From NCBI GenBank assembly GCA_025594325.1, contig JANHCV010000005.1:372001-436000 (forward strand): DNA of 64,000 bases. The letters run 5' to 3'. The stretch is from Blastocladiella emersonii ATCC 22665. Its lineage: Eukaryota > Fungi > Blastocladiomycota. Shown here piece after piece: positions 4,879-47,801 of this stretch. Under the pieces are notes generated by a model. It had not been told where the DNA came from. It ran no database searches and saw only the letters and a list, made by a program, of their open reading frames with translations. Numbering within the stretch: position 1 is the first letter of the stretch; every line of letters starts with the position of its first letter. Made by a program: the position numbers and the translations under genes.

Positions 4879-4894
4879 CTCTCTCTCTCTCTCT
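4879..4894. repeat. (CT)8 tract / polypyrimidine tract at the outer boundary of the left arm
   Basis: ctctctctctctctct followed by ccaccgcacag; a CTGAC (branch-point-like) motif lies upstream. It looks like the 3' end of a 5'-UTR intron and coincides with the duplication breakpoint. Confidence 0.6.
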
Positions 4895-4925
4895 CCACCG
4901 CACAGTTAAATAGCAACGTAAACTG

Positions 4926-6497: not shown

Positions 6498-7511
6498 ACA
6501 CGTTGTTGCTCGCGTTAGACTAAAATACATGCCTCTCATATTTCGCAACTGGTATCGTTCGTTTGCTCTCCTGCCTGCCTGGGCCCGTGGAGGCGATGAC
6601 GGCGAGAGCGACGCGTCCCTCAGAAAACGCGTCTCGCTGCTGCCGCCACGCGAGTTTCATTTCACCTGACCGCGTTCTTTCGAACAAGCCGAGCGCGCGA
6701 GGCGCGAGGCGTGATTGCAGCCCGTTTTCGGCAATCTTGGTCACGCACAATTACACTCGCGGTTTTGTCAAAATGACTTGGAGCCAACCTGAACCACATT
6801 GCGCTTGGTTTTCAATCGAGGGGTAGGGGCCCGCGCCACGGAGCGCGCGCGCGTGGGCCGCGAGGGAACGTGCGCCTTTGTCCAATTTGTGGCCAGGCGT
6901 GCGAGTCCTGAGCGCTTTCGAGTACACTGGGCCGAACCAAGGGGCTAGCGTGCGTTCCTCGATCGCCTTGTCCGCGAGCGCAGCAAACATGAGCATGTGC
7001 TGAAAGGGGGGTTTGGCGGCGAACCACGAGCGACCTGGTCCGCGATCCAGGCCGCTCTGCACCCCAAGCCAAGCGCCTTCTTCTTTTTTTAGACCCGTTT
7101 GATGCGTAGGTGTCCAACGTGCGTGAGGCCCGGGCTTGTCATTCCGTGTCTCAGGGTATTGGTGCGGTTCAAGGGTTCAAGACGGCCTTCATGGTCGTAG
7201 ATGGCGCGACTCTGTACTTGCGAGCCAGCCGCGCTCAATTCCACGATCGTTCTGTGTAGTGTGTAGGGATTGGAATCCGCTCTCGCGCGTGAAGCTTGCG
7301 CATGGCGTTGTTGTCAATGCTCAGCGCCGCCGCACGACGCGGCCCATGGCGCATGGGACGCGCAACCACCTGCTGGTCAGCATGCAAGGTTTCTGGTATT
7401 TGCGAATTAATGAGGGGATAAGCTCGTTTAGCGACAAAAGGAGCTTCGTTGGTGGTGCATTTTAGTCTCAGGCTCGCGGCGACAAGAAGAGAAAAATCGA
7501 GGGCTAAAGCC

Positions 7512-10483
7512 GCATCACCAAACCGCACCCCAGTCAAATAAAATCGATCGACCATCGATCCACCCTTTGAATGGGTCGGACCCAGTGCAAGGAGATTGAC
7601 GTCGACCCGATATGTTACTTTTCCGATTGACCCTTTGATCGATCTGACGCGTCGATCAAGTTTGCACGTGCACTTGAACGACGCGTCGTGTGACCTGTGA
7701 CCACTCGAACAACTATCGAACGAGATCTTTTCCCGCCCGATTGATAAAAGTAACATGTTGATCGGGTCCGCTGCAAACGTCGAACGATCACTCGCATGAC
7801 CCAGTCCTGACCTTGAACGACACACCGAATGAGACGCAATTTGATATATATACGCGGCCGCACGCGCAGGATGAGGTGGGAGGGACAGGAAGAGCCGACG
7901 ACGAAGGCCGCAGCTTGGTCGGCGACCCCCCGTGCGTGCGACGAGCGTCGCGTTGGCTCGCACGCGGGAGGCCGGCCGCAGCGCATGTCGCGAGCCCCGT
8001 CGCCTTGGCCGCGGTCGCCGTCAGTCCTGCTTCTTGACTGCTCGCGTTGTTGATGGACGGACTTGAGCTGTTCGACGGCCGACTCGAGCAGGTGGACCTT
8101 GAAGGCGGTCGGCGAGGGCAGCGGCGGGCGGTGCAGCTGGTTGACTTGAGGAGGTACTCGAGCAGCAGGTGGTGGGGACGCGCAGGGACCGAGGTGATCT
8201 CGTACGTCAGCGTGAGTCCGAGTTCTTGACCCGGCCGTGAACGCAACCCGACTCGACAGCGAGTGCAGCAGGAGCCCGGCTTGTTCAGCTACTGCGAATG
8301 CGTAATGGTCAACCAGGAGTCGGGATACAGGAAGGTCGGACCGGGTCGCAGACCTTGACCATGAACAAGTACGCGGCCGAGTGCGGGCTCGAGGGCAGCG
8401 CCGACCAGTCAGTCGGTGGGCGAGCCCCGCAGCAGCTTGTCGTGGTAAATCGAGCCTATGGGTGACGTGGCGGCGACGAGTGACCGATGATCAAGAAGGT
8501 GTTGGGCGAGCGGGTCGTGTCGGCAGGCACCAGGTCAGAACCCGAGCGCACCAGCTCGCGTGCGGTAGAACCGGACAGCGCCGACGTGCCGGGCGATTAA
8601 TCACGACGAGTACAAAAGGGGTGGAGCCCGTACCGCATGACCTCGGGCGTGCCGCGAGGGCGGACGACGAGGCGGACCTTGCCGCTGCAGCGTGGTGTAC
8701 TTGGTGACCTACTCGAGCCGGCCGTGTCAGTGTTGGTCCGCGAGGACGCCGACCGAGTCGCATGCCTCGAACTGGGACTCGCACGCGCAGCCGAGCGCGT
8801 GCTTGAGGCCAGCGACGACCCGAGCAGCGAGACCTCGCAGCGTGTTCTTGATCACAGTTGAGGTTTGTTGTCGTTGACCGAGGCTATGGGCGACGTGGCG
8901 GAGACAAGTGAGCAAAAAAGTCAGGTCAGGCGAAGAGTCCGATCGACGCGAGCACGCGAGCCACGTCGCCGGGACCCGCGCCGACGGACGACACGAGCGA
9001 GACCGCTCGGGGACTCGAAGCTCGGCGGTGCCCGCACGCAGTGCGAATCGCGCCGAGAACGCGAAGGAGAAGGACTATACCTTGCGGGCTTGGGCGCGTC
9101 GTGCGCGAGTTGACGCCGCAGGTGAGGGTCAGCCCACTTGCCGCTGCTTGGCGTACTCGGTGCCCTACTCATGGCGGCCGCGAACGTGTTAGTCTCGGTC
9201 CACAGGAGAGGTAGACCGAGTCGCACACCACGTACCTTGTCACGACCTTGTTCAGGATCGACGCCGGATGAGGGAGCGCGAGTCGCCGCGGCGCAGAGTC
9301 CGCAAAAGGGAACGCGGCTGAACCGAGCGGCGCGCTCACGTGACGTTTGCTTCGACGCGTTTCGCTCCTCCCTTCGCTGCAGCGGCGCTCTCTCCTCCTG
9401 GCGACAGCACCACGACGTCGCACCTATGACTGATCCATGAATTACTTGCTGCAAGCATGTGGCTGCGCCGTGAGCTCTGCAATTTGGTCGATACAGACCT
9501 GGTTGGCAAGCAAGCCGCGCCGCGGCGCTCCTCTCGCGTGGAGAAGGTCGTCACGGCGGTCGTGAGGGCTCTCACATCTTGAAGCTTTATGAGTCGCAAG
9601 TGAGGTGTTTTGAGCGCGTTGTTGCCCTCCGTCGCGCTTGGTCGAGCGGAAACGCGCACCTGGCTCGTCAACCTGGAGTTGGACGGCATGCAGCTCGAAA
9701 GCACGGTCGTTGAGCATTTCCACCTGTACCAGTCGGTGCCGCACGTTGTTCCGCCGGGCCTCTACGTCGTGCAGACGTTTCCTCTCTGTCCCACGCAGCC
9801 CGCCACGTGTGAGTTCCATCCACATCGTGCCGCTGTCGGCCATCTCGGCCTTCCTTCCCGTCGCGCCGAACGGGAACCGCCCCTCGTTGGCGCACTAGGG
9901 CGGGTACACCGAGTACCTCATCGCCGTGTACGACGACGACGCGAGCCTCACGCTGCTCATGATGCCGCAGATCTCCAACTTTCTTGACTTTGTGGACCGC
10001 CGCGATCCCGAAGGCGCGAACCCGACGTTTGGCAACGTGCTGGAAGCGCACGAGCCTGAGCATGGCGATACAGTGCAAAGTCGGTGCGCTACTTAACGGA
10101 TAGCTCATTCTCATCAGTTGATTCGGAGCTGCAAATTAGCTGGAACTCAATCGGCGCGAGTGGAGACGTCATTTGAGGCACGTCTCGCGCCGCTCGACCA
10201 CTTGTCTGACATTCTGCTGGGACAGATTGGCATTATATCAATCGGCGCGGGGCATATCTCGATCCACACTCGTTCGATGAGTCGTTCGACAAGCTTTTAA
10301 CTTGATCGATCAATCATGTACATAGGTCGAATGGCAAGAAAGTCGATCAACAGGTCGAATGACTTGAGCTCACGGCGATCGATACTCATTCAACGTGTGG
10401 ATCGATTTTCTTGGCCATGTCGCACGAAAACAAGTCGATCGACTCTGGATCGACTTGGCGGGTCCGGCGCGGTTTGGTGATGC
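7512..10483. mobile_element. Decayed element A bounded by ~210-bp degenerate terminal inverted repeats
   Basis: 7512-7724 and 10269-10483 are reverse-complement homologues with four colinear blocks: GCATCACCAAACCGC (exact), ATCGATCCACnnnTTGAATG, TCGATCAAGTT and TCGAACrACT(c)ATCGAACGAG. The interior has broken coding-like fragments. Confidence 0.5.
9638..10096 (+). pseudogene. Interrupted coding-like fragment inside element A (unidentified)
   Basis: The frame ...IHIVPLSAISAFLPVAPNGNRPSLAH-TAG(9896-9898)-GGYTEYLIAVYDDDASLTLLMMPQISNFLDFVDRRDPEG... continues in frame to TAA at 10094-10096 with host-like codon bias. Confidence 0.3.
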
Positions 10484-11555
10484 CCTCTTTTGAGACCGCA
10501 TCGCGGCCGGGTAGGGTGCCGACGCTCACGTGAGCGGGGCCCACGTGAGCGTCTCAAAAAACGCGTGACAGACGCGTCGTTTGTCATCTGACCGGTGTGG
10601 CGCAACGCGTCCTGGCCGTGCACGTGACCTGCTTCGGCCTAACCTGCGGGAACGCGACGGTCAACGCGGTTTGCGATGGTCGAGCGGATCGCTTTGCGCC
10701 GATCCTCGACCAGGCACGCGAGACTCCGAGCACATGAACGCGTGAGAGATGCAGAAGCGCGGCAAGCCGCCGGCGGAGTCCGTGCCTGGCGCGTGTGTTG
10801 GAAAACGGCGCCCGTGTTCGGTGCACATCCTTAAACGACGCGGTTCACCTGGGAGCCGCTAGCACGGGCTCCTTGACAGATGCGGGCGCGAGTTTAACGA
10901 TTGCACTCTGAGCGACTTGCGAGGCCTTATGAGCGTGGATTATAGTGAGTGAGGACCGCCATTTTGAACGAACGTGTGTCGTGGGAGCGATCCGCCCGTG
11001 TCAATGGTCCCGCCTATCTGTGCAATGTGGATCTTTTACAATATTGACGAGCAGCTCTGGCTCTGCTCTGCGCCGCCCTCTTTGCGTTGCAGTTCGTGTC
11101 GCCTGACGGCGCGCTCCTGACGCGGGCCACGGCCATGGTCACGCAGAGCGCCGCGAGCCGCGGCCGCCCACCCAGTTGGTTCGGACAGGTCACCAACACT
11201 CTCGGCGCGGCGCTCGCGGCTTCGGATGAGCTCCGCATGCACGCTGGTAAGGGCACAGCGTATGTGTGCGCGGACAGCTGTCCGCAGCCGCGAGCGAGAT
11301 CCCAAGCCTGCCCTCGAGTTTATGTTCATGGTTGGCGTCAGCTTTCTCGGACGCGTCGTCATGCCGCTCGCCGCGGACTCGGTTGACAAGATCTACTACG
11401 TCTTCCACATCGTATTACAGGCAGGACTATTTACATGGACGCCTCGCTCCGCCGCGCTGATTCGCCAGACGTGGCGGCGGGTGCAGTCGTCTTTGTGTAA
11501 GCGGGTCGCTGGAACTCGCTGTTCGCGTCCCCAACGGGAACCACTCGAGCTTCCG

Positions 11556-11870
11556 CTCTCCGAACTGTGGGGCGCCTTCGCCGCCGCCGCGTCCGCTCGC
11601 CGCGGCGAAAAGCTCACCCTCATGCTTAACGATAATGGCGTTGTCGAATCGACTTAACGATAAAGGCGTTGTCGGCTCGGCCTCCAAGTTGCTCTTGCCC
11701 TCCTCCCCAAGAATGCGAGTCCGCGCAACGTGCTCGCTCGAATGGGCAGTGCTCCGCTGGATCATCGCGACCCACGAGTTCCAGGTCAACTTTGAGTGGG
11801 TCCACAGCCACGCCGGGAACTCAGGCACCAGAACGCCGACGTGCTCGCCAACGAGGGCGCTGCCGCGCAT
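11556..11870 (+). pseudogene. Frameshifted RNase H domain relic (retroelement-type)
   Basis: 'SELWGAFAAAASARRGEKLTLMLNDNGVV' (E/D motif region), then '..W..LRWII...FQVNFEWVHSHAGNSG', and after a 1-nt shift at about 11827 'QNADVLANEG'. Together these give the RNase HI C-terminal W-V-x-x-H-x-G-x-x-G-N-x-x-A-D-x-L-A motif. A local 22-bp tandem duplication (11625-11646/11653-11674) also breaks the frame. Confidence 0.6.
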
Positions 11871-12504
11871 CTGCCACTGGGAGTCGTGGCCGCCGTCCGC
11901 GCGGACCCGGACACACCCTTCACGGTGCGCTGGTGCGGCTGGGACCTCAACTCAAACCCGGGGCGCGCTCCCCGCCGCCTGCACACAGCGTGCGGCACGT
12001 CTCCCTGCTCGCCCTGACTCCACCAGCATCACCGGTTCGTTCGCCGAGCAGCTTGGAGGCTCAAACCGTATCAAATGCACCGCGGTCTCTGTCGTGGACG
12101 CGCCGCTCGCCGCATGGTTCAAGCGGATGTACAACCACCTGCGCGAGCTCATTGACCCGCGTCTCGCTCTCCCCTCCGCGACGGCCATCGCCTTGAGCGC
12201 CGCGCAGGAGCATGCTTGGCGCCCGCGCTGCAACGCGCGCGATTGCTGACGCCGCGCCCGTGACTCAAGTCGGTGCCCTGCCGCAACTCAACGCAATCGA
12301 CCAGCCGCACCGCCATCCGCTGAAGCGCGCGCACCGCGCAGCACTTGATACGCGCTATGCTGCGGCGCGCTATGCTGCAACGCGCCGCTCTCATACCCTT
12401 GCCAAAATTACTGCCGTAGCGGCGATGTTGAGGACTCGTTCAACGGGCGCTTACACGAAATTCAAGCGAACGCTTACACGCAATTCAAGCGAACGCGCTC
12501 TCGC

Positions 12505-12587
12505 ACGGCGCAAGCGCCCAACGTGGCGCGGGCTTTAGCCCTCGATTGAAAACCAGACGCGAAGCGTCGAGGTGGCTCAAGTATAAT
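12505..12587 (-). repeat. 83-bp dispersed element head (copy in left arm)
   Basis: Reverse complement matches 27766-27848 at 81/83 positions. Confidence 0.85.
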
Positions 12588-15336
12588 TCGACCACGCCGG
12601 CCCGCTCCCCCAGTCATGGATTGGAACCCAAAGTCGGACGTCCTGGGCCATCCTGTTCTCGCCACTCTATCTTTGCGGGGCTGTGTACTGTGAGCGCCGT
12701 CTCCCTCAAGGCACTGCGGTGCGAGACGGCCAGCCACACACGCGTGAGACATGCGTACGTGATATCGCGACGCGTCCAAGTCGAGTCAAGTCGAGTCGAC
12801 GACGGTTCCGGCCAAACGAAAATCAGCTCATCTGAAGCGGTTGGTCGTTGGTTGCACACGGGCGCGAGCACCGTCATGAAAGAGGTGGTTGTAAGACGGG
12901 TTTCGCAAGTGGGTCAAGGACGATATGTTTGCTCCCCGCTCCGCTGACGCAGGCTGCGACATCAGTAAACACGCTTGCCTCGCTCAAGGTGTGCCAACAA
13001 GCGACATGGGTAAGTGCACGAGCCCCGCGTCCAACGGTTGCGTTCTGGTGAAAGTGAACCCGAGGAGAAAGGTTTGTTTACGCGGGCGGGCATGCCACAG
13101 CGTGCTCCGTTCCAAGTCGCTTTGAGGCTCGCCGCGCGAGGCAGAGCCAGAGATGCGGATCGAGTGCGTGGTCTCGTCAACGAGAGTTTCCGCCGAGCCT
13201 GTACTACATCGCTGGTGAATCAATCAACTTTCCTTCGCGCATTTTCTCCCCAGAAGGCTCAATCCGCAATGAGTGAGTACATGCAGAGCACAGCGTGCTC
13301 CAAGGTTTTTTCCCGCTGGTCGCACTAACTCCGTAGCTCATGCTCCAAGCGCCAGTTGCAAACAACATGCATGAATAAGCACAGCTGGTCGTTTCGCAAT
13401 TCATGCGGTTTGCGTGGCGTTCCAGGGGGAACGCGAGGCACAGGAGTGCATATCATTGATACCATAGAGTTGAACAGGTCTCACGAGGCCGTGACGGTTG
13501 AGAACTCTCTTTATATCCGCGGAGCAGGGCCAAACGAGAGAGGGAAGGAGCAACTTTCTCGGCTGGTCCAACGAAACGGAGGCAGCGGTGGGCACGCGCT
13601 CCGGATCAGTGGCACGATCACGGATCCGCGCTTTCACTTGGCCGCACCCGCGAGTCAGGAAATAGCAGGTTCTTTTGCGCTTGCTAACCAAACGCGCTGC
13701 GTTCGCGTGCAATTGATGGGACGCCGGTGCTGGAGCCCGCTGGTTTCGTGTGTAATCTATTTTTTTTTTTTTTCAACTGAGCTTGCCAGGGACATGTACG
13801 TCATTCTGAAGTGGACAGTTACCACTGACGGATCGCTCCGCAGCACAGGTTCGCCAGCAGTGACATGTGGTGGGAAGTACTGCTCAGGCGGAGCTCTCGA
13901 GCTCGCGGTCCGCATCCCGTCCGGGAATCTCGCGCTTGACAGCAAAAACAAGGAATTTCTCAACAACCCGACAACCAAGATGCTCGTATGCACTCTGCGG
14001 GGCACGCTTCAGCGCAGCACGACTGCTCGAGCGCGTTTGTTCTGCCCTGGTGGGCCATCCCGACCCTACGGGATCCGTCCGTGCCACCTGTGAAAAGCAT
14101 TGTGCCGTTGCCAAAACCTAGGCCAACACAAAGGCTGACAGGCTTGCTGAGCAAGAAGCTGTTGCACTTTCTTCGATTAAAGGTTTTTTTCTTCGCGCGG
14201 CTACAATGGCAAATCAGACCTGCAGCGGATCTTGTGCGGCCATTTCACCGCCCACGACAAATCCCAATTCGCTCAGCTGGTGTGAGCGCCATTTCCATCA
14301 ACGAGCGCATATTTACTAGCCGCCCCCAGATGGACTGCGTCGTCGCAGCACGCACGCCAAGCACCAGCTCCGTTGGCGAGTTGCTGCCCATTTTGCAGAT
14401 CTCACGCGTCCCACGTACTTGGAATCTCGTGAGCCTGGTTGAGGTTCGGTGCAACGTGCTCCGCTCAAGTTTCAATGACCCGCGTCGTTGGGCGTCGCGC
14501 TTCCGTGGGTTGTGGCAAAGCAGGTCACGCGCCCTGCCAAGACGCGTTGCGCCACAGCGGATAGATGGCAAACGACGCGTTTGCCATGCGTTTTGTCCAA
14601 GTTACTTACATGGATCGCGCTCTCATGCGTTCATCGCCCTACTCCCGCCGCGAAGCGTCCTAAAATTGAGAGCTTTAGTCTTCAACATGGATCGTTGTGA
14701 CGGGCTGTTTCAGCTGCAGCGCGCCACACAACCACGGAAGCACAAGCCCACTGTCCGACCGCGCTTCTGTTGACCTTCCAGCCGAACGGTGAGGGCACAA
14801 ACTGGACCGACGCGCATATCAACCCAAGAGACCGACTTTCTCGCTCTGGACGCCGCTTGGAGCTCGATCTTTGCAGCGCAGTGAACCACTAGCTGGGCAG
14901 CGTGCAACCACGCTTGACAGCCGTTTCGCAATGGAGCTCATGATCCCGTTTTCAGATGTGAAACCCCTCCTAAAGTCAATTATATTCAATCGGGGGATAA
15001 TGATTTCTGACCAGTGCAAGTTGCGTAAGTCAACACCAGATGGGCTCACACACTTGGAGTGGCCGCCGTTGCCAGAATAAGCTCGCGATTACTCGCTGGA
15101 GGTTACTGTGCCGTCATTGAACGCAATTGCCCCGGTCCTAGTGCCTGTTGTCAACACTGGGAGTACCTTGATCAGCAGGTGCAGCGAGCGTCAGCAACTG
15201 CACGCTGTCCTGGGAGGCGCGATACGACTTCAAATACTGCGGATCACGATGTGAGATATGTATTAGGTGTACGATAGACTGTATAAGACCGCAATAGGGA
15301 CAAAAAGGAAGGCCCCGCGACCGCGGGGCAGGCACG

Positions 15337-15347
15337 AAAAAAGAAAA
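15337..15347 (-). terminator. Pol III terminator (T4-C-T6) of the left tRNA-Ser
   Basis: Oligo-T run immediately 3' of the tRNA on the minus strand. Confidence 0.7.
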
Positions 15348-15429
15348 CGACAACGGCAGGGTTCGAACCTGCGCACGCATAGCGTAACCGCTTAGTAGGC
15401 GGTCTCCTTAACCACTCGGACACGTTGTC
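15348..15429 (-). tRNA. tRNA-Ser, anticodon ACT (82 nt, long variable arm)
   Basis: GACAACG TG TCCGAGTGGTTAAGGA G ACCGC CTACTAA GCGGT TACGCTATGCGT GC GCAGG TTCGAAC CCTGC CGTTGTC G. All stems pair, A and B boxes are intact, the variable stem has 4 bp and the discriminator is G73. The layout is that of eukaryotic tRNA-Ser(GCT), but position 34 is A. Confidence 0.92.
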
Positions 15430-15534
15430 GAAGTCGCCATCCCGCTGGCTGACCTCATACCACCTTTGGTCTTTCTCACCACTCCCTGCAACGTAATCTA
15501 CGCAACGCATCAACACCCCTCCAAAAATCTCGAG

Positions 15535-17568
15535 ATGGAGGCGTCAAGTGGTGGTGGTGGCGTCGTCGTCGCGGCTCGCGACGGCGGCCCCGCCGCTCCC
15601 ACCCCTGCGCCCCCTGACCTGGCCGCCACCACAGCGACGTCGTCCTCGTCGTCGTCGCTGTCGTCGTCGTCGCCGGCTCCCATGGACGAGGATGTATCGA
15701 CCACCTCGCCCTCAGCATCAACAACCAACGCCACAGCCGCTGCTGCGGCTGGTGCGCAGCCCAACGCCACCCTCCACGGTGCCCTCTCCCCCTCGCCCCC
15801 CTCGCCCGCTGAGGGCTTCTACAACGAAGAGTACCCGCCCGCGGCGCATCAACTCGTCCATGCGCAAGGCCCGTTCCCCGCCTCGGAGCACTACACGCTT
15901 GCGTTCCGCGTCGCTGACGTCCGCCCCGCCGGCACCCCCGCCAAGGAGCTGTGCCAGCCGTCCCTCACCGTCAAGGAGCTCATCACGGACAAGCTCTCGC
16001 ACATGGGCCTGCGCAAGGGCATCCGCTCGGTCCGCACCGTGCACTGGACCGACGGCAACTACGTCCACGCCCGCTTCCGCAAGCTTGCGTCCGCGCAGTG
16101 GGTCATGCGCGGCGGGCTGCCCATTGGCCCTGGCACCAAGTGCACCACCACCGGCGGCAGGGTCGGCGAGGACCTGGTCCCGCGCGACGCGACCGAGAAC
16201 CGCGTCAGCCACATGTATGCCAAGGTCATCGTCTCCAACGTCCCCGACGCGTGGTCAGGCGAGCTGCTCATGTCGCTGCTGGTCCAGTACGCGATCGGCA
16301 GCGAGACGCGCGCTGCGCTCCTCTCCCTCGACAAGCCCGACCCCAGTCGCACCCGCACCGCGTCGCTCCTCCTGCCCCGCCACGACGCGCTCTCGCTCAT
16401 CCACAACGTCCGCTGCTCTGTCATCAACAACTGCGCCATCTCGTTTGACGCCACGGTCGTGCAAAAGGACCGCCGCGGGTACACGGTGCCCAACTCGCTC
16501 TGGCTCCACGGCCTGCCCGCCGGCACCACCGAGGGCGTGCTGTACGACTACTTTGAAAGCATGGGCGTCAAGCTGCACGGCGTGCGCGTGCGCCGCGCGC
16601 TTCGCTCGGGCGAGGAGCGCCTGACGCGCACCGCGTGCGTCCGCATGCCGCTGCCCAAGGACGTCCAGGACGGTCTCAGAATGGGCGTCCTCCCCATGAA
16701 GGGCACGTCCGTCTTCCTGCGCAAGGACGGCGAGCGGTGCTGCCACTGCTGCGGGTCCGACGCGCACTGGTCCACGTCGTGCGACGCCGAGAACCCCGCC
16801 AACCCGGTCCGCCGCTCCACGCGCAAGCCCAAGCCGTTGCCGCCGTCGTCGCGACCCTCCAACGCCAGCAACACGTCCACGTCGTCGCGCAAGCGCCAGC
16901 GCGACAGCATGGTCGTCACGCCGTTGGCGACCGTATTGCCCGCAGGTCGCGCCAGTCCAGGTTTGTCCTGGTCCAAGGTCGTCACCTCCTCCTCGCCCGC
17001 GCCCACGCCCGCGCCCGCGCGCGCCGCCAGCGCCGCCGTCTCGCTCGCGTCGTCGCTCGCCAAGGCCACGCTCCCCATGACGCTCAACCTCGCCGCGGCC
17101 GCTGCGCGCAAGGAGGGCCCGCTCGCCGCGTTCGGCCGCCGGTATGGCTGCCTCCCTGATGGCCCTGCCTCTGCCGAGGCCAAGGCCCTGTTCCAGACCC
17201 TCGCGTGCCAGGTGGGTGCGGTCTTGGCGGAAGCGGCCGCTGCGTCCAAGCTTGCGTCCACCATCATCAACCTCGCCACAGCCGAGCGCGCCGCCGCCAA
17301 GGCCATTGCCCAGCGCACCGCGGCCCACGCCGCCGCCAAGGACGCGATTGACGCGGTACGTGCTGCCGCCGCTGCTACGGCTGCTGCCGCCGAGGGCGCG
17401 GACGGCGCCGAGTCCATGGAGGGCGTGACTGCAACAGCACCCAGCACCGACGAGGCTGCTGCTGCGTTGTCGTCCGCCACCGCCGCGTCGCCCGCGCCGC
17501 CCGCAGGCAGCGCCAGCGACGGCGAGGCCGCCGCGGCGCTCGCTGGGATCGCAGCAGCTGCCGCCTAG
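15535..17568 (+). CDS. Gag/ORF1p-like nucleic-acid-binding protein (RRM-like domains + CCHC zinc knuckle)
   Basis: First ATG at 15535. RRM-like segments 'KVIVSNVPDAWSGELLMSLLVQY' and 'SLWLHGLPAGTTEGVLYDYFESMG', a perfect C-x2-C-x4-H-x4-C knuckle 'CHCCGSDAHWSTSC', then an Ala-rich helical region. No introns. Confidence 0.72.
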   Translation: MEASSGGGGVVVAARDGGPAAPTPAPPDLAATTATSSSSSSLSSSSPAPMDEDVSTTSPSASTTNATAAAAAGAQPNATLHGALSPSPPSPAEGFYNEEYPPAAHQLVHAQGPFPASEHYTLAFRVADVRPAGTPAKELCQPSLTVKELITDKLSHMGLRKGIRSVRTVHWTDGNYVHARFRKLASAQWVMRGGLPIGPGTKCTTTGGRVGEDLVPRDATENRVSHMYAKVIVSNVPDAWSGELLMSLLVQYAIGSETRAALLSLDKPDPSRTRTASLLLPRHDALSLIHNVRCSVINNCAISFDATVVQKDRRGYTVPNSLWLHGLPAGTTEGVLYDYFESMGVKLHGVRVRRALRSGEERLTRTACVRMPLPKDVQDGLRMGVLPMKGTSVFLRKDGERCCHCCGSDAHWSTSCDAENPANPVRRSTRKPKPLPPSSRPSNASNTSTSSRKRQRDSMVVTPLATVLPAGRASPGLSWSKVVTSSSPAPTPAPARAASAAVSLASSLAKATLPMTLNLAAAAARKEGPLAAFGRRYGCLPDGPASAEAKALFQTLACQVGAVLAEAAAASKLASTIINLATAERAAAKAIAQRTAAHAAAKDAIDAVRAAAAATAAAAEGADGAESMEGVTATAPSTDEAAAALSSATAASPAPPAGSASDGEAAAALAGIAAAAA

Positions 17569-18864
17569 GTTGTCCGGGACCGCGCGCGCGCCGCCGAGGC
17601 TGCTGCGCAGGAGGCCGAGGCGCACGCGCGCGTCCAGGTCGCCAACGCCGCCGCCGCCGAGGCCGCCGCGCGCCAGGCCGCTGCCGAGGCCAAGACCGAG
17701 GCGTTGCACGCCGCTGCTGCCCGCTCGCGCGCCGAGCGCGCCAAGTCCGAGGCCGAGGCCCTCGCCGCCACCAACCACAAGCTCGCCAAGGAGGAGAAGG
17801 CCGCCGAGCTCACGCTGCGCAAGGGCAAGCGCCGCGCAGGCGCCGCTGACGCCAGGGCTGCTGCCTCCGCAGCTGCAGACGCCGCCGCCACCATCAAGGC
17901 CCAGAAGGCGCGGGTCACCAAGCTCGTGGACCAGATCGACCTCGCCAACGAGCGCGCGGCAGGCGCCGCCAGCGCGTCCGAGGAGTTTGGCCGCAACATC
18001 CGGCGCATGTTCAACGCGCTCGCAGCGGGCGTGGAGGACGGCCGCATCTCGATCGCGCCCGAGGTGGAGCAGGAGTTCAAGGACATCCAGGCCAACGTGG
18101 CGACCGTGTTCCACAACGTCCTCATCCACGGGTACGGGCCCCTTGGCGACGAGGACCTCATGGACAACGACAATGACTACGTGCCGTCCGACAGCGACTC
18201 GTCCGACGCTGAGGACGACTACGACTCAGACGCGCCCATGGACGACTACCAGGCCCTGGGGGCCCAGCTCGACTGCGCCGACTGCGGGGGCCAGTTTGAT
18301 GGCCAGGCCTGCACCCTCGCCAACATGTGCAGCGCGCGCGCCGCCACACACGCCAAGCTCGCCAAGAAGATTGCTGCTGGGGCAGCTGCCGAGGCGGCCA
18401 TGCTCAAGGCCAAGACCAAGAAGCTCGAGGACATGGGCTTCGGCAAGATGGACCGGACCTTCATGATCAACGCCATCTATGGGCCCTCCTCGCCATCGCC
18501 GTTGGCGTCCGCCCAGCGCGCCGCCTCATCACCGTCATCATCGTCGCTGCTGGCGTGGCTGTCGGAGCCCTCATCCTCGCGCACCCCCGCCTACTTGCTG
18601 GCCGCCGTCAAGCTGTCGACACCCTCGCCCTTGCCTGCGTCCACGTATGCGCGCGCTGGCCCGCCACCACCGGCCCCCTACCTGTCGCTGCTGCCCCCTG
18701 CAGCTGCTGCCCACGCCGCCGCTGCCGGATTGCCAGCTGTGGTGCACCTCGCCACGTCGCCGGCGGCCCCTGCGCCGGCCCACCCACCAACCACCCCCAA
18801 CCGCCAAGATGGTGTCGGGAGCGCGACCGTGACGGTTGGGACCCAGAGCGCCAAGGCGCTCTAG
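17569..18864 (+). CDS. In-frame continuation of the ORF1-like frame beyond a single TAG (Ala/Lys/Glu-rich coiled coil, acidic tract, Cys cluster)
   Basis: Same frame as 15535-17568. After TAG at 17566-17568 it reads VVRDRARAAEAAAQEAEAHARVQVAN... and stays open to TAG at 18862-18864 with unchanged codon bias. Contains 'CADCGGQFDGQACTLANMC'. Confidence 0.55.
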   Translation, partial: VVRDRARAAEAAAQEAEAHARVQVANAAAAEAAARQAAAEAKTEALHAAAARSRAERAKSEAEALAATNHKLAKEEKAAELTLRKGKRRAGAADARAAASAAADAAATIKAQKARVTKLVDQIDLANERAAGAASASEEFGRNIRRMFNALAAGVEDGRISIAPEVEQEFKDIQANVATVFHNVLIHGYGPLGDEDLMDNDNDYVPSDSDSSDAEDDYDSDAPMDDYQALGAQLDCADCGGQFDGQACTLANMCSARAATHAKLAKKIAAGAAAEAAMLKAKTKKLEDMGFGKMDRTFMINAIYGPSSPSPLASAQRAASSPSSSSLLAWLSEPSSSRTPAYLLAAVKLSTPSPLPASTYARAGPPPPAPYLSLLPPAAAAHAAAAGLPAVVHLATSPAAPAPAHPPTTPNRQDGVGSATVTVGTQSAKAL

Positions 18865-21800
18865 GTTGAAGTTCTGCACAGCCACACCCCGCGACGGCCG
18901 GCCTGACGGTTAGCCAGAGCGGCGCTTGGTTGCTCGTACGCGTCTAGCGCGTGTGTCCGCATACTGTCGTCCCTCCTTCACAGTTCGATGAGCTCCCAAT
19001 ATTAATTTTGTTCTCTCGGACACGTTGTCGATCGAATTTAGTGTCATAACTTTATCGCGCTACGGTCTAATATATACTTTTGCGACGCAGAGCTCGGATA
19101 AATTACCCGAACCGCTGAAAATTGCTTCAAACGGCGCACGAAAATTCTCACATGCTGTCGTGGACCCAGTCATCATGTTCTGTAAAGGAGAGCCAATTCC
19201 AACGGCTGGATCCCGAGAAATCGGCACCGCGAAATTCGACCCTCCAAATATGCACTTAACGATTCGCTCGTCTTTCCACCGTACTTGCCACGGTAAAATT
19301 TCTCAGAGTATCCACGAGTAATATAATGAGTTTTTACGTTGTAACCGTACCATCTTCGAGCCAACACAAAATGTTTAGGCCCATCCCCACGAATTTTGAC
19401 TGCAGTCAAATTCAAGCGTTTACTGACCTTGACTCCCCGAAATTACTCGAGCTGGCCATGAGAGATATCCAAACCATCCGCACCGTAAAGCAATAGCTAA
19501 ACTCAATTCCCCTGCCGTATCGGGCAGAGGAAAGGGTGGTCCCCACATCTACGCGCGAACCATGTTGCCAAGTCCAAACGGCCAATTTCAGACCCACCTC
19601 CTCCGTGACCTCAAAAAGACAACGGGAGTGGTTGGGCCGCTGAAATGAGACGAAGTTGCTGGTTCGAATTTCTAGTTGCCCTGAGCCTTTGCTCCAGGCC
19701 CTGCACGACAGTTTCGTTGAGTTGCGCAGTTCAAGATGCTAAGTGAAGGGCTGCTGCTCCCTTCATAGCCTCACAGCGGACGTCAGAAATTTTGATCACC
19801 AGCGCAATGAAAAAAAAAAAGGTGGATGCTCCTCGTATGCACCGGGCAATTTACTCGTCAATTTACCATATTCCCAACACTCGAATTCATCAGAGTATTC
19901 ACGAGTAAACTAACGAGTTTTCAAGTTCTTCATCGCACCCGTTTCAATCCGAAAGCAAAAATGTCCGGGACATGCCAATACAACTCGACAAGTCAAATTC
20001 AAACTCCAACTAACCCTTACACATCTAAAGAAATAGCTGCCTTGCAGGGAGGGTTTTGCTGAGCAATTCTCACCAAGCCTGCAAAATTTCTATTTATCTT
20101 TGCGCCGTCAGGGATACGAAAAAGAGTGGTCCTACAATTACGCGCGAATCCTACAACCGCGTCCCAAAGTGTCAATTTTGCCCACGGCTTGGAAACCACG
20201 AAAAAACCCACCACTGTTTAGTCGTCGACACAGCATGAGAGAGCGAGGACTCAACATTTCGTGTTGTTTAACGTATTGCTCCGAATTTTCAAAGCCAAAT
20301 TTACTCAGCGCAGTAGCCCAGCAAGCTAAGTTGAGGGTGTCCTCTCCGCTCACTAGTTAGTTGCCTCTTAAATGTGCCCGAGTACCTCAATTCTGATTGC
20401 CTGTACATACCAAAATGAGGATGGTAAAATAGTGAGTTGCTTGGGAACTCGGCGATCATGATTTATTCAGGTATTTTGATGAGGGGCAGTCAGCGATCAT
20501 GATTTATGCATGTCAATGTCATGGTCCGCACGCAAATTGCAGCGCCAAATTCAAAACGCGTGTCTCGCTGGATCCCGTGCAAGCTCACGGTTCCCACCAT
20601 CGGAAATCGCGGATCACAAATTGTGCGGCCAGCTGCAAATTTGCACTCAATTCTTGGGCCGGGTCGGGCGAGGGTCGAAATCGCAAACAAAGATTTCCGG
20701 TCAATGCAATACCTGAGTGTGATGGGGGAGGTCAGGGGGATTTTTCGCTGGTGGTCGCGGTGGTCAGAGTTGCCCTTGGAGAAAGTTGGACTCTTCACCA
20801 CAACGGCTCAGTCGATTGCGCTGTTCTTGACGGTGATGAACTGATCGTGGTGGGAGCTACAAAAGAGCTAATTAAGCTTTGGGGTGGTTGGAAGCCGGGT
20901 GTCGAGAAAAAAATGGCGATCGGATTCTCAACGCTAACACACCGCCGGGGTTGATTCGAGAAGCTAACCTCGAAAGTCGTTCCTGCGCAACGGAGTGAAG
21001 GATGTGACTCGCGGAAATATACACAGCGCTCAGAGGAGCACGGAAACGATAGACACTGTTTGAATTCATGGGGTCGCGAATCGAGTACATCATCCAATCC
21101 AGAGGGTAAACAGGCTTTCTCCTGGCGGCAAACTGGTCAACTACCTCTACCTCGGTAGATAAACTTGGTTTCCTGGCTGGGATTGCAGTTTACAGAGGGC
21201 GAAACGTGTGTTCGCCTGAAGGGGTTTGCGGTACGCATGCTGTTGCGGATTGCGCTTGCGGATCGAGCTTTTTAGATGGACGCCTACCGGCGCGGCAAGC
21301 CAAGCGGCCAAGAAGAGTTCGGAGTTCTCCAACATCTGTCTGAACGTGATCGCATGCTGGTTTAACTCGTACTAGTTGACGAGAGCGAGCGAGTGAAGGA
21401 CCGCTTCCGCTAGCACGAATGGACAACAATTGCCAGCCTCGAGTAAAGCTGGTGAGCCCTGGTACTTAGCTTGCTCACAAGTCAGCGCTTCTGCGAGAGC
21501 GCGCGGGACGGTCGCTCAACCAGTGAAGCACGTCCACGGCGCTGAACCGGCACGTTGCAAATCTTTCCAGACTTGAATGAGGTGCATGCGATCCAGTTGG
21601 TGCGATTGAGCGCCTGGAACGCATCAAAGGCCACTTCAGAGAGTTGCGAATGGTGCTATCCCTTTGCTTGAACACAGGGTTGCGGAACGGCCATGCTCAA
21701 GCTGCCTCTGACGCTGGTAGAACATGTAACACCGCGTGATCGAGCTTCACTATCTGCCACGCGACGCTTTTAGAGTTGAAACGCGAAGTGAACGTTTCCA

Positions 21801-24800
21801 GCTTCATGGTAGAGTCATGGATCAGTAGGCGACATTCTGTTCGTCACTCAAGGGCGGGTCTCCGACTTGGCGAGCGGCCCTATCAACTAGCTGAAGCTGC
21901 CGGCGGTCAAATCAAACGCGGACATGACTTCTGATGCGCTGGGAGCGACAGGCGCGGCTCGTCAGCGGCTGGCGATGCATGTGTTACGGGTTCGGCGCGG
22001 CGCTCGAATCGCGCAAGAAGACATAAACTAAGCGCAATTTGAGAGAAGTCCATGGGTTTAAGACATTACATCAAGTGTTATCTGCAGCATACGTAAAATA
22101 TGCCCGGAAGGTGGAGGGAGCAACTGAGTGAGCTGTGGCAGGCGTGTGAACTCCACCGTCCGACGCCACCGCAGGGTCACGTTGGCCGCGTCCGTTCACG
22201 CTTGGCATGCGAGCTCGTTCAGGCGCAAGATTCCCTCAAAACGCGATGAATGCCCTTTGCGGCTCGCTTGAGAACCTCGCGTGAGCTGCGGTGCGATCCG
22301 GCCGCTGCGATGTGCTTGGTACTCGCTCTCACACAGCAGAGTTCGGCCACATCAGCAATATTCGCCTGTCGTCGCGCGGGCAAGAGAGCCGAAGGCATGA
22401 GCTCGCTCTTGGTCTGTCCGTACGACTGTGACACGGTTATCAGACCCGGCTCGCTTCTTGGCCCCTGTTTACGAAGGAAACGGTGGGCGCTCGCTGTGGA
22501 CACGAATGCGCGGAATGGAACGGCGAGGTGCGACCCCAGGAACTGTCATGACAAGGGTCTCGTCGCTTCCAAAGCCTAACCAACATCTAAGCTTTCATCG
22601 ACTCGAGAACAAAGGGGGTAACCGCGCGGCCGCGTCACGACCCGGAACGCGCCGTGCCCTGCCAGTTCCTCCCTCCTCCCTCCTCCCTCCTCCCCTCGCA
22701 GTCCTGCTTTCAAGTGCAGCTAGTCGTTTTCTTTTTTTTTTTTTAACCGCGCGTTTCAAGGCTAGCGAAACTGAGCGAGAGTCGTGGCACGGCGGGTTGC
22801 GAGACGGGCTGCGAGACGCGTCGCGAAAACACGTGTGCGGTCACGCGCACGTGACACAGCTTGGCGTGGACTTTGCCGCGAGCGCGCGTCGGGCGGCCGA
22901 GTGACTCTTTCGCCGCGCCGCGGTCGGTCCACGCTCCCTTGCTCATCACCACTCGCTGCAATGTATCACCCGTCCGCCAACGAAGCACACTACGATCTCG
23001 ACGCACGGCAACCACGCGGCGACCGTCAACAGGTACGCGTCGCGTCCCGCTGCCGCGCCCGCCGCCGCGCGCTTGGCTCCCATCGCGCCGACCGTCGTGT
23101 TGCGCTCCCGTGGCGGTGCGCCCGGTGTGGTGCCCTTCACACTCAGCTCTGGCGCGTCGACGACGCGCTGTGAGACCAGCGGTGTCGTCGCTGCCGCGCG
23201 TGCGCACCGTCGTACGCGGGCTCCGCCGCGCTCGTTCCTCGGGCGCAGCACGGCGCAGCGCAAGGGGACCCCACCGGGCTACCAGCCGCGTGCGCGCTCG
23301 TCAAAGGTGCTGACACCTGTGCGGTGCCCATGTAGCCGCCGGCGCGCGTCTGCCACCAGGGACTCGACATTTGCTGACACATGGACCTGGGACCATTAAG
23401 TCAGCCTCGCTCGCGACGGTACGCCGTCTCCGCCACACCACCACCGCGTGTCTCATGCACTCACGCTGCACGCTCGCGCCAGTAGCGCCGACAGGCTCGC
23501 TCAAGCGGTTCGGCCGCGCCCACCACGTGGGCCAAGTCCCAGTCGCAGGTACGCTTGACTCTTCTCGTGGCTGCGCAAGAGTTGGTGCGCGACTGACATG
23601 CTCGCTCACATTGCTCCTCGTAGCCCCTCGTGATCCACTGGTCTCTCGCTGCACCATCGAACCGCCACCTCTCGACGGATCAACAACTGATGCGCAGCAT
23701 CCGCAAGCTGTAGGTTGCCGATTCCTAAGACGACTCGGTACGCCCTCGTCACACGCCGCTCGAGGCGCAGCGCGACTCACATGAGCTCTCGGACCTTTGT
23801 TGCTTGTAGCAGCGATCTCTGACCACCATCTCGCCCGGCCGGTTTCTGTACTCGGCATCGTGCCGCGAGCTGACCGCGGATCGCGTCAAGCACGAGGCGC
23901 GTGCTGTCCGGTCGGTCACGGGCGGCGAACCGGAGACGGCGTCCGCGGTCCGCTCCGGTACCTGCTTGTCGTGCATCGTCGTCGCGCATGGGCGTTGATT
24001 CCGACTCGCATGCCGCGCGACCCGCGGCGGTGGCGACCTGACCTGTATCTGAGATCTCCCTGTACGCAATACACTCGCACATTTGCTCCAAAGGCAGGAA
24101 ATAGACATCCCTGACTACTTGTCTCCTGCCTTTTTCTGTCGGCATCACCACCAGGTTGTAGGCCATACCAGGCCAGCCGCCAGCTCCTATTGGCAACATA
24201 TGTCAGATTGCGCATAGAATTAACCCATAGACGACAATGGCACACTGGTGTCCCTCACCCCACCCCCTCATATCTCCACCACTTTTTACTCTACACTCTC
24301 GAAACTTTGCTCAGCAAAATTGTAGCTATCGATACTGTCAGGGCCCGAGATTTTTAGCGTGGCGCACCGCCTAACGGCTGAGCTGGGAGGCGCCGCCAAA
24401 GTTATGAACTTCGCGCGAGCGCCCGCCCTGACAACACCTTTGCATGGATCTGGTTCAAAATTCTTTTGAACGTACTATGCATAGGTTGCTACCACTTTGC
24501 GGAGTTAGAAGATGTGGAGTTGAAAATTGAGGGCGTGGGAGTCGTGGGACGCTCGGGTCCACGCGTTTTGGAGCCAAGATCGCCCCGTTCTCCATCCAGG
24601 TGCGAGAAATCGCGACGCAGCCGGCACCCACGTGTGCGCCTCGTTGCTCCCTATCGGATAAGCTTGAGACCAAGTTTGTGGCTTGCGGGGGGAGCGAGAA
24701 AACCGCCGAAAACCCGATCGGACCCGCTGAAATCGGGGTTGGACAGCCGTGTCCCTAGCCGTCCCCGCCCCGCCACCCAGCCCGCCGTCCGCCGAGCGGC

Positions 24801-27765: not shown

Positions 27766-27848
27766 ATTATACTTGAGGCACCTAGACGCTTCGCGTCTGG
27801 TTTTCAATCGAGGGCTAAAGCCCGCGCCACGTTGGGCGCTTGCGCCGT
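27766..27848 (+). repeat. 83-bp dispersed element head (spacer copy) with two hairpins
   Basis: ATTATACTTGAGGCACCTAGACGCTTCGCGTCTGGTTTTCAATCGAGGGCTAAAGCCCGCGCCACGTTGGGCGCTTGCGCCGT contains GACGC-TTC-GCGTC and GGGC-TAAA-GCCC and matches 39995-40077 and the reverse complement of 12505-12587. Confidence 0.85.
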
Positions 27849-27866
27849 TTCGCGCGTGGCAGTACA

Positions 27867-27994
27867 GCGCGTCGCAGCTTCGCGCGTTGCAGCTTTGTGC
27901 GTCGCAGCTTTGCGCGTCGCAGCTTTGCGCGTCGCAGCTTTGCGCGTCGCAGCTTTGCGCGTCGCAGCTTTGCGCGTCGCAGCTTTGCGCGTCG
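27867..27994 (+). repeat. 15-bp minisatellite (GCGCGTCGCAGCTTT) x8 plus partial
   Basis: Eight contiguous units counted from 27867 to 27986 (first three with single substitutions) plus a partial unit to 27994; no spacers. Confidence 0.95.
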
Positions 27995-37047: not shown

Positions 37048-37152
37048 CTCGAGATTTTTGGAGGGGTGTTGATGCGTTGCGTAGATTACGTTGCAGGGAG
37101 TGGTGAGAAAGACCAAAGGTGGTATGAGGTCAGCCAGCGGGATGGCGACTTC

Positions 37153-37234
37153 GACAACGTGTCCGAGTGGTTAAGGAGACCGCCTACTAAGCGGTTACGC
37201 TATGCGTGCGCAGGTTCGAACCCTGCCGTTGTCG
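37153..37234 (+). tRNA. tRNA-Ser, anticodon ACT (mirror copy)
   Basis: Same 82-nt cloverleaf; anticodon ACT at 37186-37188. Confidence 0.92.
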
Positions 37235-37245
37235 TTTTCTTTTTT
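37235..37245 (+). terminator. Pol III terminator (TTTTCTTTTTT)
   Basis: Oligo-T directly after tRNA G73. Confidence 0.7.
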
Positions 37246-39994: not shown

Positions 39995-40077
39995 ATTATA
40001 CTTGAGCCACCTCGACGCTTCGCGTCTGGTTTTCAATCGAGGGCTAAAGCCCGCGCCACGTTGGGCGCTTGCGCCGT
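39995..40077 (+). repeat. 83-bp dispersed element head (right-arm copy)
   Basis: 81/83 match to 27766-27848, same orientation. Confidence 0.85.
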
Positions 40078-47656: not shown

Positions 47657-47801
47657 CAGTTTACGTTGCTATTTAACTGTGCGGTGGAGGGAGAGGACCG
47701 GCAGCGCGCCCTCGCCGAGCTTTGGTCGACTTCACCGCACCCCACCGTACGGCAAAACAAGCGCGGTTCGGAAAATTACGTGTATTCACAAGCTGCTGCG
47801 A

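Follow-up and report, generated by a model that had tools for sequence, protein, structure and literature searches.

An element carrying only an ORF1, lodged at the 5' end of a tRNA-Ser gene of Blastocladiella emersonii, is most likely a non-autonomous (HAL1-like) derivative of a target-specific non-LTR (LINE-type) retrotransposon of this fungus, a reading to which we give a probability of about 85%. A sequence-only reading of the 64-kb stretch of DNA analysed here (the window) had proposed a non-autonomous, sequence-specific retroelement that leaves its tRNA gene intact. This proposal is supported by an empty site, a second insertion, a 3' tail shared with copies bearing reverse transcriptase (RT), and the homology of the ORF1.

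The insertion is bracketed by a 17-mer, CTCGGACACGTTGTCGA, which is found on the forward strand at 15415-15431 and 19015-19031 and on the reverse strand at 33551-33567 and 37151-37167 (four matches in the window against 0.02 expected). The earlier positions for this pair and its mirror are confirmed, and the mirroring reflects a perfect 19.5-kb palindrome: both pairs lie within an inverted repeat of 19,531 nt with 100% identity (4887-24417 and 28165-47695), and 15347-19031 was checked to be identical to the reverse complement of 33551-37235. On the reverse strand, ARAGORN predicts a tRNA-Ser with the anticodon ACT at 15347-15430, and the Rfam tRNA model (RF00005) is matched at 15348-15429 (56.7 bits, E = 8.8e-11). 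Given these Rfam bounds, the 17-mer corresponds to tRNA nucleotides +1 to +15 plus -1 and -2, as the sequence-only reading had it. The left copy of the target-site duplication (TSD), at 15415-15431, runs from +15 to +1 and on to -1 and -2 within this intact gene, which is the regenerated target and stands head-to-head with the element. The right copy (19015-19031) is an orphan tRNA head, and ARAGORN, Rfam and the empty-site comparison all bear out this earlier distinction between the two. The whole insertion is mirrored in the other palindrome arm at 33551-37234 on the reverse strand, as orphan head, element (33568-37148, reverse strand), TSD and tRNA-Ser (37153-37234, forward strand).

An unoccupied paralogue of this tRNA-Ser(ACT) gene (L011/L012; 95% identical) has its tRNA head joined straight to the homologue of window position 19032 onward, and provides the empty site that had been suggested as a check. 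L011/L012 matches both flanks of the insertion (95% over 158 bp on the left and 86% over ~750 bp on the right); the segment at 19032-19800, the former upstream flank of the tRNA gene, is 86% identical over ~750-785 bp to the L011/L012 sequence abutting the tRNA head. Because of this empty paralogous site, the interval in the window can be recognised as an insertion. A second copy is present at C1:2107881-2111462, being 97.4% identical to the window copy over 3,580 nt and flanked by CTCGGACACGCCATC, which represents +1 to +15 of the adjoining tRNA-Ser(TGA) and forms a 15-bp TSD. Copies at the same tRNA position had been anticipated, and the C1 copy and the window copy (contig C17) are indeed inserted at the same nucleotide of different tRNA-Ser genes, with the C1 duplication derived from its own tRNA. 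Either half of the ORF occurs in only three genomic copies, two of which are the palindrome pair, and none of the three is truncated at the 5' end. The independent insertions of the ORF1-only unit therefore number only two (n = 2).

The two insertions might instead go back to a full-length LINE that inserted once, lost its ORF2 on site, and was then copied at the DNA level together with its surroundings. Large duplications and palindromes abound in this genome, and one of the three copies is itself a palindromic duplicate, which would fit such a history. However, no flanking homology beyond the similarity of the tRNAs is shared by the C17 and C1 copies, and the homology between them is bounded exactly by the element ends. 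Since the flanks, the tRNA isoacceptors and the TSDs, each taken from the local tRNA, differ between the two, the ORF1-only form is deduced to have inserted at least two times, and segmental duplication appears highly improbable.

The element is preceded by two extra nucleotides at the 5' junction (AG, 15432-15433, forward strand), where the pairwise alignment shows ACCTC in the C1 copy. Sequence common to both copies begins at 15434 with a 5' UTR (15434-15534, forward strand; 98% identity, three genomic copies only), followed on the same strand by an ORF1 frame of 1,109 codons (15535-18864) and a 3' UTR without poly(A) (18865-19014), the last part of which (18928-19014) is the tail shared with the RT-bearing copies. 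What had been described as one intronless frame is in fact interrupted by an in-frame TAG at 17566-17568 (forward strand), a codon that reads CAG in the C1 copy. The C1 frame is broken as well, by one extra base ~20 nt downstream of the TAG position, and hence both ORF1-only copies are disrupted by different lesions. Pfam searches identified no RT, endonuclease (APE), RNase H or recombinase in the element, in agreement with the sequence-only reading, which had also correctly noticed that no poly(A) tail is present. No terminal repeats (LTRs or TIRs) are reported within the element, and the ORF1 frame shows no similarity to the RT ORF.

Both copies are annotated as protein-coding by NCBI (H9P43_004790 and H9P43_000781), which raises the question of whether this is a domesticated gene, derived from a LINE ORF1, retained for a cellular RNA-binding function and merely situated beside tRNA genes. 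Both copies keep their first 677 codons open, with dN/dS values that stay under 1 (0.36 and 0.60), but the mutational spectrum is dominated by CpG transitions and these ratios say little about selection. The gene models bridge the stop and the frameshift by different and implausible introns, one of ~31 nt, and in H9P43_004790 an ad hoc intron spans the TAG. Moreover, no orthologue was found in 1.84 billion representative proteins, and insertion is evident from the TSDs, from the 3' tail of LINE type and from the paralogue that lacks the element. A host gene is accordingly a very unlikely explanation.

The mobile-element reading is strengthened by the relatives of the ORF1 itself. In BLASTP comparisons the ORF matches the ORF1s of two metagenome contigs, L068 (68.9 bits, E = 1e-15) and L067 (59.3 bits, E = 6e-13), whereas none of 100 shuffles exceeds 24.6 bits; its identity as the ORF1 of a LINE, which had been put forward for checking, is thereby established by homology to full-length ORF1+ORF2 elements. 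These contigs carry full-length elements of the ORF1 plus APE-RT-RNaseH type, in which the ORF1 overlaps an ORF2 with Exo_endo_phos, RVT_1 and RNase_H domains, and these ORF2s share 36-41% identity with the RT/RNaseH ORF of B. emersonii. By reading the sequence, the ends of the metagenome relatives seem to abut strings resembling inverted tRNA 5' heads. A CCHC zinc knuckle (CX2CX4HX4C, aa 403-416; 16741-16782, forward strand), seen already in the sequence-only reading, is invariant in the alignment of four ORF1s. Neither the knuckle nor an RRM is recognised by Pfam in the ORF1, and the profile matches of the knuckle region to retroviral nucleocapsid knuckles are weak (E = 0.03-0.1); the ORF1 of L068 gives a sub-threshold zf-CCHC match (E = 0.0035). 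Just upstream, aa 320-400 (16492-16734, forward strand) form the block best conserved with the metagenome ORF1s, and the alignments together with a low-confidence model point weakly to an RRM-like domain. The AF2 models of the ORF1s are poor (pLDDT 42 and 47; range 42-47) and show a beta-alpha-beta-beta-alpha-beta topology, for which the best 50 Foldseek matches in the PDB are all RRMs (E = 0.008-0.07, obtained with a low-confidence model), and profile searches with the ORF1 likewise give weak matches to RRM proteins.

Relatives bearing an RT/RNase H are also present within the B. emersonii genome. Over its last 87 nt the element matches, at 87-88% identity, the tails of four RT/RNase H copies that have lost their 5' parts (C6, C1, C5 and C17b), including a nearly identical 65-nt core for which a three-way structure is predicted. 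All seven genomic 3' ends terminate in TTGTTCT, and the junction motif TTGTTCTYTCSGA is found exactly at these seven known ends and nowhere else in the genome. The four partner copies are truncated at the 5' end to 3.05 kb (C6), 2.6 kb (C1), ~3.3 kb (C5) and 1.15 kb (C17b), and they encode an RNase H after the RT, followed by a Cys/His motif. The partner RT gives generic matches to PDB structures (R2, 2e-7; L1 ORF2p, 5e-6), and the L1/Tx1 link raised by the sequence-only reading is not supported. The C6 copy adjoins an intact tRNA-Ser(TGA) with a 14-bp TSD, and at C17b the TSD measures 16 bp; for the C5 copy no clear tRNA target or TSD was found. At five of the six independent 3' junctions the adjoining sequence is the head of a tRNA, or one resembling it, with its end at +14/+15 or +16; tRNA-Ser genes account for four of these five. 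In this assembly none of the partner copies was found to possess an APE domain or a complete 5' end, and the expectation of an RT-bearing partner sharing the 3' end therefore holds for the tail and the target, but not for a full-length copy or one with an endonuclease domain.

LINE RTs are capable of template switching, and only the last 87 nt of the element are common to the partner; each 3.58-kb copy might consequently be a chimeric one-off, made when the partner RT jumped from its own tail to an ORF1-containing RNA, without any stable lineage. However, both copies share the junction between the unique part and the tail as well as the 5' end. The identity of these two boundaries points to one origin, after which the element inserted at least twice, and separate chimeric events are hardly credible.

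Direct repeats made from a tRNA end also resemble bacterial attL and attR sites, and the sequence-only reading had named as its alternative an att-type recombination, by which an integrative DNA element that brought a tRNA head with it would have joined the tRNA 5' end. No recombinase, integrase or transposase is present in the element, however, the repeats range from 14 to 17 bp with extra nucleotides at the 5' junction, and the partner copies are truncated at the 5' end to differing extents, as is characteristic of target-primed reverse transcription. Since the repeats vary in sequence from site to site, each being identical to the local tRNA, this exceedingly improbable alternative is excluded, and on sequence grounds the flanking repeats are true target-site duplications. 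The variable truncations of the partner further suggest that the element moves via an RNA intermediate and is mobilised in trans, although the ORF1-only unit, having neither poly(A) nor 5'-truncated copies, bears none of the usual traces of such an intermediate. It is from relatives 30-41% identical that we infer both the mobilisation in trans and which enzyme makes the nick.

In the mechanism we propose, the partner ORF2 protein would recognise the structured 3' tail of the element RNA in trans. The first nick would fall within the D-loop/A-box on the strand with the tRNA sense, following +14 or +15 (GTCCGAG^TGG), and its 3'-OH would prime reverse transcription on the target. The other strand would be cut 14-17 nt away, at tRNA +1 or just upstream, and fill-in of the staggered cut would duplicate the tRNA head (its first 15 nt and at most 2 nt in front of them). 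The tRNA gene then standing head-to-head against the element 5' end would be complete, with both internal boxes (A and B), and an orphan head would remain at the element 3' end with the old upstream flank. A gene regenerated in this way could be targeted again, and in C1 the ORF1-only element forms a tandem with an older, truncated RT/RNaseH copy at the same tRNA gene, the ORF1-only element lying on the upstream side. The system is probably inactive in this strain, since both ORF1-only copies are frame-broken and no endonuclease-bearing partner is found in the assembly.

Textbooks illustrate safe-harbour strategies by site-specific LINEs and tRNA-associated retrotransposons. The closest published geometry we found is that of NLTR-A from Dictyostelium purpureum, a non-LTR retrotransposon with an RNase H downstream of the RT that lies 2-6 bp upstream of tRNA nucleotide +1 and could not be assigned to a known RNH-bearing clade (Spaller et al. 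2016, PMC5006619). The likeness is one of geometry: in B. emersonii there are 2-5 extra nucleotides between the TSD (ending at +1 to -2) and the element 5' end. In the text of PMC5006619 on NLTR-A, 'target site duplication' or 'TSD' has no occurrence and orphan tRNA heads are unmentioned; an ORF1-only derivative, unlike in B. emersonii, is not described there. The Dictyostelium elements TRE5-A and TRE3 are non-LTR retrotransposons that also use tRNA genes as safe harbours, with TRE5 placed ~50 bp upstream and TRE3 ~100 bp downstream of the gene through targeting by Pol III factors (PMC5006619; PMC3706591), but they use no fixed nucleotide inside the gene and their TSDs lack tRNA sequence. TRE5-type targeting outside the gene was rejected for B. 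emersonii, where tRNA +15 marks the 3' junction and -2/+1 the 5' junction.

Among site-specific LINEs, R1/R2 (28S), Mutsu (5S), Keno/Utopia (U2) and Dewa (tRNA-Leu spacer) resemble the B. emersonii element in entering multicopy RNA genes at one set nucleotide, in many cases with no poly(A), and in their tandem or repeated occupation (PMC3706591, PMC4640811). In the literature compared, such LINEs either interrupt their target (R1/R2, Keno/Utopia, Mutsu) or adjoin tRNA genes (TRE5, TRE3 and, in the spacer, Dewa), whereas the B. emersonii cut spans the 5' end of the gene and the duplication restores it. Dada DNA transposons likewise occupy specific positions inside tRNA and snRNA genes, but have a DDE-transposase, 6-7 bp TSDs and terminal inverted repeats, with no reverse transcription (PMC3706591). 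For the ORF1-only organisation the counterpart is HAL1 ('half-L1'), a mammalian non-autonomous L1 derivative (PMC5753468, citing Smit 1999 and Bao & Jurka 2010), which similarly keeps a LINE ORF1 without an ORF2 and presumably depends on the autonomous relative for its mobilisation in trans. HAL1 belongs to the poly(A)-tailed and weakly site-selective L1 family, whereas the B. emersonii element has a structured non-poly(A) tail, a strict one-nucleotide target in tRNA-Ser, an ORF1 of ~1,100 codons and a zoosporic fungus as its host.

Tentatively, with somewhat less than an even chance, the B. emersonii family, its GC-rich relatives from metagenomes and possibly Dictyostelium NLTR-A may form an undescribed APE-RT-RNaseH LINE lineage. 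Its endonuclease would read the DNA of the tRNA D-arm/A-box directly and nick at +14/+15, with a cut that always spans the gene 5' end and is hence 'self-healing', allowing the target to be used again and built into tandem arrays. The ORF1-only element would then be a dedicated parasite of this machinery that keeps its ORF1 because the encoded protein works in cis on the element RNA. As a HAL1-like parasite of a parasite in an early-diverging fungus, the element raises the questions of whether the 65-nt structured tail is sufficient for trans-mobilisation and whether the ORF1 protein is required in cis. The first nick would lie in the internal promoter region of the tRNA, yet the 14-17-bp duplication rebuilds a gene that can be targeted again; the same geometry may account for the unexplained '2-6 bp upstream' specificity of NLTR-A. 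An endonuclease that cuts tRNA-Ser genes at a fixed site would also be of interest for targeted-insertion tools.

String matching recovers the 17-mer CTCGGACACGTTGTCGA four times in the window, against 0.02 matches predicted by shuffles: at 15415-31 and 19015-31 on the plus strand, and at 33551-67 and 37151-67 on the minus strand. The sequence-only reading of a repeat standing on both sides of an element, with a mirrored second pair, is thereby reproduced. The minus-strand pair is accounted for by a perfect inverted repeat in the window (4887-24417 / 28165-47695; 19,531 nt per arm, 100% identical, spacer of 3,747 nt), and a scripted comparison showed 33551-37235 to be the exact reverse complement of 15347-19031. 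The whole insertion and its tRNA are duplicated in both arms of this palindrome; hence the palindrome is younger than the insertion, or its arms have been held identical by conversion. A minus-strand tRNA-Ser(ACT) was placed at 15347-15430 by ARAGORN and at 15348-15429 by the Rfam tRNA model (56.7 bits, E = 8.8e-11). Since the Rfam boundary falls at 15429, the 17-bp repeat comprises tRNA positions +1 to +15 and two upstream bases, in accordance with the earlier proposal that it is a tRNA head.

Two unoccupied tRNA-Ser(ACT) loci (L011 and L012, C17:254.8/258.0 kb) match both sides of the insertion. The left flank including the tRNA is 95% identical over 158 bp, the right flank is 86% identical over about 750-785 bp, and between them the tRNA head runs straight into the homologue of window position 19032 onward. 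These loci thus represent a paralogous empty site. In the whole genome (32.65 Mb, 21 contigs) the ORF is present in three copies only, the two in the palindrome and one at C1:2107881-2111462, which is 97.4% identical to the window copy over 3,580 nt. The C1 copy lies head-to-head with another gene, tRNA-Ser(TGA), and is flanked by CTCGGACACGCCATC, which is +1 to +15 of that adjacent tRNA; the flanks of the C1 and window copies are otherwise unrelated. A further copy at the same tRNA position, with a 15-bp target-site duplication (TSD) from its own tRNA-Ser(TGA), is thus found as had been anticipated. An att-type recombination product had been considered as an alternative, in which the repeat would be a recombination core. 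However, the flanking repeats vary by site, each is identical to the local tRNA target, and the 5' junctions are extended by AG (2 nt) or ACCTC (5 nt), which argues for staggered-cut duplication and against an att core. The empty site, the second insertion and the junctions together show that the interval is an insertion, with the 17-bp repeat as its TSD.

The 3.58-kb interval between the repeats holds one long frame (15535-18864, plus strand), and no poly(A) was found within it, as first noted. The frame was also described as intronless; it is indeed single, but it is broken by one in-frame TAG (17566-68). A genuine intron removing this stop was considered and rejected, because the other frame past 17568 is Pro/Arg-rich junk and the two NCBI models propose differing ad hoc introns. 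The lesions differ between copies, with the TAG in the window copy (15434-19014) and one extra base in the C1 copy, and the models H9P43_000781 (P0001) and H9P43_004790 (P0002) span the stop or frameshift by different improbable introns. These two models and H9P43_004659 (P0005) are annotation artefacts over transposon remnants. One of the three is a fusion of the LINE RNase H with the C-terminal domain of an ERAP1-like aminopeptidase. Between the two ORF1-only copies there are 94 differences, among them 89 transitions and 79 that involve a CpG, and T/A states at these sites are about three times more frequent in the window copy than in C1:2107881-2111462. The divergence is almost purely CpG decay, and this pattern suggests cytosine-methylation-driven repeat mutation in B. 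emersonii.

The last 87 nt of the element (18928-19014) recur with 87-88% identity at four other genomic loci, each of them the 3' tail of a 5'-truncated copy of an RT/RNase H LINE: C6:87.7 kb (about 3.05 kb), C1:2105.2 kb (2.6 kb), C5:292.9 kb (about 3.3 kb) and C17:739.3 kb (1.15 kb). All four tails finish with ...TTGTTCT, and the copies form one family, hereafter the partner. In its ORF, an RNase H domain (E = 4e-13) precedes a CX1CX7HX3C motif. Whether a full-length ORF1+ORF2 (APE-RT) partner shares the 3' end had been posed as a check; RT/RNase H copies do share the tail, but all of them are 5'-truncated and lack an APE. The C6 copy adjoins an intact tRNA-Ser(TGA) with a 14-bp TSD, at C17 the TSD measures 16 bp and lies within a tRNA-like relic, and no clear TSD was seen at the C5 locus. 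The C1 copy lies directly 3' of the ORF1-only element, and there a single 15-nt head is shared as TSD, on the right side of the newer insertion and on the left side of the older; this pair is a tandem double hit on one tRNA gene. Across the genome, the junction motif TTGTTCTYTCSGA is present at all seven known 3' ends and nowhere else, and four of 17 GTGTCCGAGTGGT heads stand beside insertions. A 65-nt core of the tail is nearly identical between the ORF1-only and partner families. The predicted fold of this core is a three-way structure in which the first hairpin keeps its stem and the loop varies, with slight covariation support.

Database searches with the ORF itself gave little. Pfam returned chance matches only (Tudor_2, Imm71, Decapeptide) for both ORF halves and four sub-domains. 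For the 677-aa N-terminal query, the word-indexed search (5.8 billion proteins) yielded two B. emersonii gene models and nothing else, and HMMER, run exhaustively over 1.84 billion representatives, matched only the query's own gene model. The RT/RNase H ORF of the partner is 36-41% identical to P0006 and P0007, the ORF2 proteins of two GC-rich JGI metagenome contigs (L067 and L068), in which Exo_endo_phos, RVT_1 and RNase_H all exceed the Pfam cut-offs. In these relatives a long ORF1 (1,078 aa on L068) lies upstream of ORF2 and overlaps it. The B. emersonii ORF aligns with the ORF1 of L068 over 310 aa (68.9 bits, E = 1e-15) and with that of L067 over 172 aa (59.3 bits, E = 6e-13), whereas 100 shuffles of the L068 ORF1 reached at most 24.6 bits. 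The B. emersonii ORF is thus a LINE ORF1. A search with the L068 ORF1 core matched only itself, and a metagenome scan for further relatives gave one unrelated RNase H locus only.

The conserved ORF1 block includes an LWL-x-G-(L/V)-P strand, an invariant CX2CX4HX4C knuckle and an NP...W motif. The two AlphaFold models are of low confidence (pLDDT 41.7 and 47.4), yet their topology is beta-alpha-beta-beta-alpha-beta, and the top 50 Foldseek hits obtained with them are all RRM domains (E = 0.008-0.07), a weak support. Profile searches likewise matched nucleocapsid knuckles and RRM proteins weakly, and an ESM Atlas feature search (scores ≤ 0.86) gave leads toward CCHC / ZCCHC3-type RNA-binding clusters. 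An RRM plus CCHC protein is therefore plausible.

If the junction geometry is taken literally, a nick would fall in the tRNA-sense strand after +14/+15 (GTCCGAG^TGG, inside the A-box/D-loop), and the 3'-OH at this nick would prime the synthesis of cDNA from the tail ...UUGUUCU. The other strand would be cut at +1 or just upstream. Repair would then copy the tRNA head, so that the element's 5' end adjoins a complete tRNA gene, while the former upstream flank keeps an orphan head. The relatives' ends may show the same tRNA-head arrangement, by our own reading of short strings: 14 nt after the element's 3' end on L067 read as an inverted class-II tRNA head, and L068 opens on another copy's 3' end together with 16 nt of inverted tRNA head, a layout that resembles the tandem on C1. 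For the truncated tRNA-like stretch that lies downstream of the element on L067, Rfam gave a T-arm-like match only and no confirmation. Both ends of L068 (1-104 and 8826-8928) consist of the same element 3' end of about 100 nt, which indicates head-to-tail tandem copies with the 16-nt tRNA head between them, or else an array of this kind that was wrapped around in assembly.

Among known systems, ORF1-only L1 derivatives (HAL1) have been described for mammals (PMC5753468). Dada DNA transposons strictly target the inside of tRNA genes, while the LINEs Dewa and TRE5-A target a tRNA-Leu spacer and integrate near, not in, tRNA genes, respectively (PMC3706591). NLTR-A of D. purpureum was described by Spaller et al. 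2016 (PMC5006619) with no mention of TSDs; it lies 2-6 bp upstream of tRNA +1, in agreement with the B. emersonii 5' junctions, and by analogy it may use the same mechanism. Our literature search on Blastocladiella retrotransposons found no paper.

PF14529 (APE) has no match anywhere in the genome. Matches to PF03372 were rejected as the partner's APE, being located in other LINE families (C11, C21, C9) and not beside partner RT copies; a full-length APE-RT-RNH element of another LINE family is present at C11:2.228 Mb. RT copies near contig ends of C19, C5, C17 and C4 are segmental duplicates that show 92-96% identity with the partner and have neither an APE part nor the shared 3' tail. Their RT begins about 270-310 residues nearer the N-terminus than in P0006/P0007, and no APE match was found beside them. 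As no partner RT copy has an adjacent APE, this assembly holds no endonuclease-bearing partner, and the family looks inactive in this strain, unless a master copy is unassembled. Partner RT/RNase H remnants lie within about 10 kb of contig ends in three fetched stretches (L063, C19:2006501-2016500; L064, C5; L065, C17:29001-39000), and likewise near the ends of C21, C6 and C2. The segmental duplications around them are 91-95% identical across the whole 10 kb fetched, and these duplications resemble subtelomeric blocks of repeats in which a single old LINE insertion is carried along.

Several other features were observed around the tRNA and the palindrome. The anticodon of the window tRNA-Ser, ACT, is normally avoided; at least four well-formed copies of this tRNA exist (window 15348-15429; L011 1434-1515; L012 1503-1584), and the two unoccupied paralogues are themselves arranged as a small inverted pair. 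Beside the window tRNA are two inverted repeats of 109 nt (10558-10666 / 14486-14594; 81% identity, 3.8 kb apart; mirrored at 37988-38096 / 41916-42024), which may represent the termini of a degenerate TIR element. The palindrome spacer contains an array of 15-nt tandem repeats with CGCAGCTTTGCGCGT-type units (27813-28022), and an 83-nt block at 27766-27848 recurs at 39995-40077 and, inverted, at 12505-12587.
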